This document shows, piece after piece, positions 30,075 through 32,528 of a DNA stretch of 64,000 bases; the stretch's first letter is position 1; every line of letters begins with the position of its first letter. The stretch is taken from NCBI RefSeq assembly GCF_052425735.1, contig NC_135758.1, positions 1 to 64,000 on the forward strand, written 5' to 3'. The position numbers and the translations under genes are program-made. Source of the DNA: Oculina patagonica. Its lineage: Eukaryota. The notes under the pieces were generated by a model. The model saw only the letters and a list, made by a program, of their open reading frames with translations, was not told the DNA's origin and made no database searches.

Positions 30075-32528
30075 TTAACTATTTCCATCTGCTCCACCAT
30101 GTGGTAATAAAGTAAAGTCCACTACATGACCAAGTGCAAGAGAAATCTCTGATGATAGTAGATTGTGTAGGCAGACACTATCATGAGTGTATATCCAGGA
30201 GCCATTTTGGAAATCATATCTCTTAGGTCCACTGAAATTTAAGAAGTAAATTAACATTATTTTTTCACTTCTTGGTAACATACTGCAGTAACTGGTGATT
30301 TCTTCAACTGAGACACTTAAGGTAATAATAAAAAAAGAACAAGTATAGAGTGGAATCCCAATTTCTTAACCTCCAAGGAAAACAAAAATTATTTGGAGAA
30401 ATTAGAAGTTCGAGAAATTCGGGCCAAAATTGCAGTGTTGAACTAAGTGAAGCAAATCCAAGGGTTCAAGAGACGTATGGTTTGAGTTAGAAATACAAAT
30501 ACAAATGTTATTGATAACTCCCTGAGGGATCCCAGGGGCCTTTTATGTTATGAGGAGGTTGGAGAAATTAGGGTTTCACAACAATAAACATTTTAGTGAA
30601 GAAATTATTCTACATGACACGAGCGTGGGACAAAGAAAAAAATCTGAGTACCCGACGGGAATCGAACCCATGGCTTCCCAGATACCGGTTGGGCGCTTTA
30701 GATAGAGCGCCCAACCGGTGTCTGGGAGTCCATGGGTTGGATTCCTGTCGGGGACTCAGATTTTTTTCTCTGTCCCACGCTCGTGTCATGTAGAATAATT
30801 TCTTCACTATTTATCACCGAGCTTAAAATCTACCATCTTTATTATTTACAATAAACATTTTATGTTTACCTTGTAGGAGATGATAACCATATTTGCTTGT
30901 TAGGGCTTTGTTTGTTGATTACATAAGTACCACGTCCTGCTAAAAGTGTAAAAATGCAACAAATTCAGCCCATGCTTATCTTATGTATTCTTTGTTAGAA
31001 AAGAAGTGAAGTAGGAAAGGTTAACTATATAAAAACTACATAAAATTCATAATCACATTAACTGCAACAATTAAATTTTGTTAGACTTTGGCAGACCTCT
31101 GTAGCATATCAAAGGTGCCTATGAAAAAAATTGATGCAAATCAAACAGCACAGTTTTGTAGGGGATGATGCTCAGCTACACATGCTGTCCCACAAATGGT
31201 AATCAAGATTAGACCTCAACAAATCAAAATTAAGCATAATCCAAAATACAAAAAGGCAAACACACAAAATTTTTAGTAATTACCTCCTAAATTAACTGTA
31301 AGTACTCCATCCTAGAGGAACATTAACCAAGAGAAAGTAGATGTTAAATTTCACAATAACTGGGGTTAAATAACATAAAACAGAAGAAAGAGGACAAAAA
31401 CAATATTCACTGTTTGATTTTAAAATATTACCAACATAATAAGTGTATGAAAGCAAATTACTCTAGCAAACCCCTGAAAGTACCATAATCTTTGGTTTTT
31501 TAAGGAAAATCATGAGCAAAGTGAATGCAGGGGTAATAACTTTGGCTGCTTGCACCCGTACTCACTTCATGTGATGGATTAGCCCCGGGGGGAGAGGGAC
31601 GGGGAGCCGCGGGAGAACCCCAAGAGACCAACAGGCGTGGCCAGCAAGACCCCAAAGACCAAGAGAAGAGACCGGCACCCACGAGACCGACGGCAAAAAG
31701 TCGCACCCCAGAACACCCAGCGAGACCCAAGCGACGGAGACGCGAGCCCCCGCCTGGGAGTCCCCCCCGGGATTAAGCCCTTCCCAAATTTGCTTTGAGC
31801 CTCTGTAGAGAGGAAAGCCCCTATCCTATCATTAACTTACACTCAAATGAACATCATAGTCTGTGGGACTTGATGGACTTTCACCAAGGTCTTCAAATAA
31901 TTCCGCTATAGCATCAAGTGTCTCATCTGCAATATTGTGATATGATAGCTCGTCTAAGGTGCTGAAAAAGAAAAGGAAAATTCTTGCATTGTACAGAGAA
32001 GATTTCTTTCTAGCCTGATACTTTACCCCCTCCCCTCCCCATCTTTTTGTGACACAATTCCCTTGCAACAACTGTGAGTCCCAACTGGACACTTAGCTAT
32101 TTCAGTGACAAATACACCAAAATATAACAGGAATAAAATACCTTGCAGTGCAGAACTTCTTTTCCAAAGGGATTCCACTCTGGTAGAGCTGGGAGGGTAA
32201 GATATATAATTACAATAAAGTAAGAAATACCGAGCAAAAAATAATATGTAAGAATCTATCCGTCACGGATATGTCACGGATCCATCACGGACATAGCCTT
32301 CACGTGTTTTACCAAATTTGACCGTCACGGGTTTTACCAACAACTAAAAATGTTTGCAAATATAAGCTAATACGAAGGTCTTACCTTAAGTCTTGTTGAG
32401 AGCAGCGAATGATGTGATCTTTTGGGTGTCGTTGAAATTAAACTCTTTTTATTCAAAATTGAAGAACAGAACGCAAAAGTCTTCACGTCGAACTTTCTAA
32501 GGAGACTAATCCGTCGAATGGCGAACAT
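30075..32528 (-). CDS. FXN: Frataxin, mitochondrial, 6 exons
   Basis: Exons 32385-32528 (Arg/Ser/Lys-rich transit peptide), 32142-32188, 31841-31961 ([19 protein letters not shown]...DYDV), 31284-31311 (DGVLTVNLG), 30870-30939 ([19 protein letters not shown]), 30075-30231 (SGPKRYD...WIYTHD). Confidence 0.95.
30596..30847. mobile_element. Head-to-head (hairpin) tRNA-derived SINE-like insertion with 15-bp TSD
   Basis: ~105-bp arms forming a near-perfect palindrome (30594-30809) with B-box-like ggttcgattcc; flanked by acaataaacatttta on both sides; decayed relative at ~28320-28450. Confidence 0.75.
31581..31775. mobile_element. T-depleted copy of the cccggggggg MITE family (intact relative at 33328-33650)
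   Basis: Colinear motifs agggacgggga, gagaccaa, gacccc, cgagacc, gaacaccc, gcgagacc; only 4 T in 31581-31770. Confidence 0.75.

Follow-up and report, generated by a model that had tools for sequence, protein, structure and literature searches.

The cryptogenes of kinetoplastids are mitochondrial protein genes whose sequences are restored in the RNA by guide RNAs, through insertion and deletion of U. In genome assemblies, the errors usually described at heterozygous insertions concern either the length of homopolymers or the all-or-none inclusion of the inserted sequence. Among transposable elements, 8 bp is the length of the target-site duplication produced by the hAT superfamily, and P elements too make 8-bp duplications. 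In corals, the CMITEs of Acropora are piggyBac-derived MITEs that duplicate TTAA and terminate in CC[C/T]T, and their filled and empty alleles are polymorphic and often intronic (PMC2872659). We analysed a T-poor block at positions 31581-31770 of a 64-kb stretch of coral DNA (the whole stretch is referred to here as the window), which shares features with each of these systems and differs from each of them.

The 190 nt of the block contain 55 A, 63 G and 68 C, but only 4 T, a count that agrees with that in an earlier note on this DNA and that makes the block an outlier unmatched in the window. On average, 190 nt of the 64-kb window contain 57.8 T (sd 11.0), and nowhere but at 31581-31770 does the count fall to 10 or fewer. 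Similarly, the block is the sole place in the window with 6 or fewer T per 80 nt, and no T-free run elsewhere in the window is as long as the three it contains (62, 57 and 53 nt). All six reading frames of the block are without stops because T is absent and stop codons need T or A, and a 76-aa ORF spans it; no relative of this ORF was found among 5.8 billion protein clusters. Of the ORFs in the vicinity of the block, none begins with ATG. We therefore reject the reading of the block as coding sequence, as its open frames reflect the lack of T and the block has no coding frame of a known family. Identity with a known RNA is ruled out as well, since an Rfam scan of 31300-33800 gave no match within the block and a single chance-level snoRNA match elsewhere.

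At 33327-33650 on the plus strand, the window also holds a 324-bp MITE of the same family as the block that is older and contains T; both its ends and its duplication are decayed. We searched public metagenomes with the inverted-repeat pattern and obtained coral-derived contigs, 10 of which carry family copies that were then aligned; since these public metagenome contigs carry the coral MITE family, they hold host DNA of a related stony coral. The family consensus was built from 11 copies, and the named members are L100, L108, L044, L039, L096 and the window copy at 33327-33650. Identity to the window copy is 78-85% for L044, L029, L032 and L039 (contigs Ga0126336_...), L041, L100 and L108. 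Members of the family are short and non-coding (~375 bp, with copies of 324-380 nt), with ends that read CCCGGGGGGGGGGACTCCCATATG... and ...CATATGGGAGTCCCCCCCCCCGGG, and with four CCCTAAGCGAGACC-like motifs and an AT-rich middle in the interior. The canonical termini are CCCGGGG... and ...CCCCGGG, the inverted subterminal motifs are ACTCCCATATG and CATATGGGAGT, and the terminal inverted repeats extend over ~45-55 nt, with arms that match at 83-91%. Target-site duplications of the family are 8 bp in length, exact for L044 (CTTATTCC) and L096 (ATCTGCGC) and matching at 7 of 8 positions for L039 (AG[C/T]AAATG).

We tentatively consider the family hAT-like, a call made from the length of the duplication alone. 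Like the MITEs of the hAT superfamily, the coral elements are short and non-coding and have terminal inverted repeats and 8-bp duplications, and the block lies in an intron as a polymorphic insertion whose empty site is clean. They differ in that the coral family ends in long G and C runs (CCCGGGGGGGGGG...), an unusual terminus for hAT elements, and in that the copy in the block is stripped of T. The resemblance to the Acropora CMITEs extends to their being coral MITEs with filled/empty polymorphism in introns, but the family described here has G/C-run ends and 8-bp duplications rather than TTAA, and is thus a different family (PMC2872659).

Several other repeated or low-complexity stretches are found in the window. 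Directly 3' of the MITE at 33327-33650, five GGGCGCTTATT(A/C) units lie 15-40 nt apart between 33660 and 33770, and look like another short repeat or the end of an element. An interstitial telomere-like (CCCTAA)n array of ~7 units is found at 33966-34079, with (GT)10 and a G11 run within 25 nt. Identical 40-nt strings at 9481-9520 and 13574-13613, 4.1 kb apart, hint at a local duplication or at two copies of a repeat. Long C-runs broken by a single T or A (C13TC13TC7...) are present at 49453-49494 and 20601-20631; these are similar to the ends of MITE family members, which are G/C runs, and could mark the ends of further decayed copies.

It had been claimed in the earlier note that the block is colinear with the MITE at 33327-33650 once T is removed, and the three pairs of sequences quoted there from the block and the MITE read as stated. 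Colinearity is upheld by global alignment of the two, in which the unmatched bases of the longer copy are 64 T, 48 A, 15 G and 12 C. It is also upheld by a search in which all T was removed from both strands of the window and the block was used as the query: the top non-self match is the MITE at 33327-33650, in the same orientation (E 7e-10), and as the search returned this MITE alone, another parent within the window is excluded. Finally, the block aligns end to end with the 11-copy consensus, with a score 9.9 sd above that of 300 shuffles. Membership in the family by colinear similarity holds only if ~190 single-base or short deletions are allowed; with mismatch-friendly scoring, only partial alignments result and the two canonical ends are ignored.

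The borders of the element differ slightly from those first proposed. Based on the alignments, the T-stripped body of the MITE occupies 31585-31771 on the plus strand (187 nt with 4 T), starting with CCGGGGGG and ending with TGGGAGTCCCCCCCGGG. The latter, the final 17 nt of the element (31755-31771, plus strand), is identical to the 3' terminus of the family, with both T retained. To the left of the body, at 31578-31584 on the plus strand, lies the target-site duplication copy ATTAGCC, which is the 8-bp ATTAAGCC minus one A, while the right copy at 31772-31779 on the plus strand is the complete 8-bp ATTAAGCC, the length also found for family copies. Both G/C ends are present in the block (CC(C)GGGGGG...CCCCCCCGGG), as is the 3' subterminal TGGGAGT, which is intact, while the 5' subterminal ACTCCCATATG is absent. 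The family members most similar to the block form the subfamily of L108, L100 and the window copy, with which it has the variants GGCGTGGCC and GACGGC in common. As these variants are subfamily-specific, the block is derived from a genuine member of the family.

Deletions in the block are strongly biased toward T. The count of deletions per base against the family consensus, which had been suggested in the earlier note, shows that 82 of 87 T are deleted (94%), compared to 59 of 111 A (53%), 29 of 84 G (35%) and 29 of 94 C (31%); thus, the deletion rate is 94% for T and 40% for the other bases (Fisher p 3e-21). T is lost independently of its neighbours, with 89-100% deleted in every sequence context, while the loss of A, C and G varies with context, from ~10-30% with G/C-rich neighbours to 50-80% with A/T-rich ones. 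Within GC-rich context, ~90% of T but only ~20% of A, C and G are lost (P values from 1e-7 to 4e-9), and the loss of A is no different from that of C and G, which excludes the joint targeting of T and A. The loss is specific to T on the plus strand of the assembly and is accompanied by a collapse of AT-rich stretches; there is no general effect on A and T.

Bases are missing from the block but are rarely replaced. Its length is 187 nt, compared to 324-380 nt for the family, with both canonical ends there, and ~190 bases are missing; yet only 2-3 substitutions are found among ~175 aligned bases, and for T there are 82 deletions and 1 substitution. T was thus lost through deletion and not substitution, as had been proposed, and with nearly no substitutions and a halved length, CpG decay and A-to-I editing were rightly set aside. 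Specifically, A-to-I hyper-editing, or the retro-copying of an edited RNA, is rejected based on 0-1 T>C changes compared to 82-94 T deletions and on the halving of the length, and CpG decay or a RIP-like point mutation process is rejected based on the near absence of substitutions and a CpG density that is raised (17 in 187 nt). The number of CpGs is indeed high, as had been claimed, but the CpGs have in large part not been kept: 6-11 of the 17 were made by deletions that joined a C to a G, and the high count is therefore a by-product of deletions that bring C and G together. A chance origin of the block is ruled out by its uniqueness in the window, by the z of 9.9 for colinearity and by the P value of 3e-21 for the T bias.

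To locate the insertion in other samples, public contigs of four runs were aligned on 31000-32400. In three of these runs, which come from three independent studies, one contig each spans both flanks and joins 31575 to 31770, with no letters between. The contigs are from a coral metagenome (X1), from organism A (X2), which is presumably the species that was assembled, and from organism B (X6), a sister species that is ~97% alike. At the joint, 6 letters (GGATTA) fit both sides, and the empty site reads ...TGATGGATTAAGCCCTT..., while the filled site consists of ...GG, then ATTA-GCC, the element from CCGGGGGG to CCCCCCCGGG, ATTAAGCC and CTT.... The target-site duplication of the block (ATTA-GCC and ATTAAGCC) is thus 8 bp, with the left copy one A short. 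The evidence for mobility is that the site of the block is empty in contigs from three studies, and it is very likely that a real MITE insertion is present in the assembled DNA. The insertion is young, since both conspecific samples and the sister species are without it.

The insertion lies within an intron of the frataxin gene (FXN), as the earlier note had placed it. A frataxin exon at ~31841-31961 on the minus strand was identified from its ORF translation and a weak match to Frataxin_Cyay (Pfam PF01491, E 0.0078), which fails the Pfam cut-off because the query is a single exon piece of 36 aa. The intron starts at 31840 with the donor GTAAGT (31840-31835, minus strand; splice signals were assigned by eye), and the insertion is ~61 nt into it. 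In the flanks, the assembly alone differs from X1, X2 and X6, the sister species included, by one G/T change at 31276 and by compensating lengths of the A-runs at 32207 and 32214 (AA versus AAA and AA versus A). These private differences would fit a private haplotype linked to the insertion, residual consensus or long-read noise, or both. A stretch at 32222-32362 in the same frataxin intron region is built of CCGTCACGG- and ATCACGGA-like motifs, and contig depth there is 600-1600 compared to ~50 in the flanks in three runs, with many loose ends; this looks like a short repeat of very high copy number, probably another MITE.

The T-less sequence itself was not found in public data. Depth is zero over 31611-31751 in the four runs, two of them deep and from the same species or holobiont, and none of their contigs is ≥90% alike. 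Across all indexed runs, the best word shares are 0.76, 0.76 and 0.75, and the words of the block are held by none. The share expected for an empty-site haplotype with the five small differences seen in the aligned contigs is 0.753; because the best shares equal this expectation, no indexed run holds the words of the block beyond its flanks. Likewise, none of the RNA runs in the index holds the 31581-31770 stretch. The JGI metagenome contigs, although at least 10 normal family copies are present among them, do not contain a 24-mer taken from the block. No further T-less copy was found in the window, in the JGI metagenome contigs or in the family loci that were fetched. Independent short-read contigs thus do not support the block. 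An empty site does not in itself prove the block unreal, since minor variants are lost from Logan contigs and a private insertion may simply be absent from the samples.

The explanation we favour, with a probability of about 0.72, is that the block represents a real, young and polymorphic MITE insertion from which T was stripped by a consensus or polishing step. The stripping is then probably not a feature of the genome, and would have arisen in software or base-calling and not in the cell. An ordinary ~375-bp hAT-like MITE would have inserted recently in the assembled individual, 61 nt past the 5' splice site of frataxin, making the usual 8-bp target-site duplication, while other individuals, and probably the second haplotype, stayed empty. 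If the insertion is heterozygous, about half of the reads would vote for a gap at each of its columns, and a small base-specific asymmetry, whether a tie-breaking order, a quality weighting or a learned threshold, could then settle each column. T columns would lose nearly always, while A, C and G would win where the reads align cleanly; AT-rich stretches would align raggedly, and their poorly anchored columns would be dropped whatever the base. The printed 187 nt would in that case be a T-stripped, half-length caricature of the element that does not exist as DNA. A toy model, intended as illustration only, in which reads with and without the insertion are equal in number and the gap beats T but loses ties to A, C and G (or in which the threshold is base-specific), reproduces loss rates of ~95% for T and, for the other bases, of 20% where the context is clean and 50-80% where it is AT-rich. 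A consensus drawn from a multiple alignment, with weakly supported columns dropped, leaves exactly the loss-only pattern that is observed.

Compared to the consensus errors known from heterozygous insertions, the anomaly of the block is similar in that it would be confined to the columns of one haplotype, consists of missing columns only and is without support in independent short-read contigs, but it is dissimilar in the near-complete loss of one base on one strand. An error mode in which 94% of a single base is lost from one strand is, to our knowledge, not documented, and this is the main weakness of ascribing the block to a consensus or polishing step. Moreover, the flanks are free of error up to the borders of the element and its last 17 nt are perfect, and for such an origin one must also assume that no columns other than the insertion-specific ones were hit. 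A study of nanopore errors reports bursts of deletions at doubled translocation speed, but no base specificity (PMC8486125). Our literature search found no description of a near-complete, one-base, one-strand loss in assemblies. Two inferences had been offered in the earlier note, an artefact and an undescribed biological process. The artefact is favoured by the empty site in three studies, the absence of the block from the public contigs examined and the pure loss of columns; nothing we found supports the process.

It is much less likely that the T-less sequence is real DNA, resynthesised in vivo over the full length of the MITE by a polymerase that skipped A in its template. Such synthesis could have occurred during one-ended gap repair or synthesis-dependent strand annealing under a shortage of dTTP, or on a template with damaged or modified bases, and would have left a private, T-stripped allele. 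The specificity for one strand, with T but not A lost in clean context, would be expected from such a process, as would an insertion site, ends and a duplication that are those of genuine DNA. Similarly, the stripping begins at the left border, and, had synthesis run in one direction only, the intact last 17 nt may be where the tract annealed, while re-priming after several skips could explain the loss of neighbours in AT-rich runs. However, a shortage of one dNTP, or an encounter with lesions, mainly causes a polymerase to stall or to misincorporate; T>C or T>G changes would thus be expected to be numerous, and instead there are 82 deletions and ~1 substitution. Furthermore, cut-and-paste insertion requires no synthesis across the element, and the T-less form, having lost the 5' subterminal ACTCCCATATG, would hardly be mobile as such. 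As conspecifics are without the insertion, the ~190 deletions would all have to stem from one event, and no part of the block is in any public run. We consider it correspondingly improbable that this coral holds DNA copied from ordinary templates minus T, through an undescribed base-skipping synthesis that acts on one strand of newly inserted or repaired segments.

A still less probable explanation is that the assembled individual has no insertion at all, and that the 194 nt entered the consensus as junk, spliced in from a read that was bad or chimeric. This would agree with the observation that every sample examined has the empty site and none has the block. Junk would not be expected, however, to carry the two canonical termini of the family in the correct orientation, to be colinear with the family over its full length (z 9.9) or to be flanked by a duplication of the 8-bp length typical of the family; the exact 6-bp repeat in the flanks would by itself arise by chance at ~1 in 4000 positions. 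Finally, the block might be a copy from a multi-copy MITE subfamily that is genuinely T-poor and GC-rich and transposes as such. This would account for its TIR-like G/C ends, its target-site duplication and its L100/L108 subfamily-specific variants, but is very improbable given that no contig ≥90% alike was found across four runs (two deep, from the same species or holobiont), that other copies are absent from the window and from coral-derived metagenome contigs, and that the 5' inverted repeat is destroyed.

The likeness to kinetoplastid cryptogenes that had been drawn for the block is not borne out. The two are alike only in that a genomic sequence resembles a normal one without T (U). In this cnidarian, the block is a copy of a transposon within a nuclear intron, with no coding role and no coding frame of a known family, and the base missing from the transcript of the host gene would be A, not U.

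If the block is real, it would represent a new and important kind of base-specific DNA rewriting. If it is an artefact, the block is an ordinary MITE printed minus its T columns and not DNA without a template, and the loss of one base on one strand is an error mode that has not been reported. There would then be a simple recipe for finding such blocks, which is to strip T from a repeat library and then search, and work on transposons, methylation, CpG or splicing near heterozygous insertions in this assembly would call for caution. The underlying biology would be modest: a MITE insertion that is young and polymorphic and lies 61 nt from a splice donor of frataxin.
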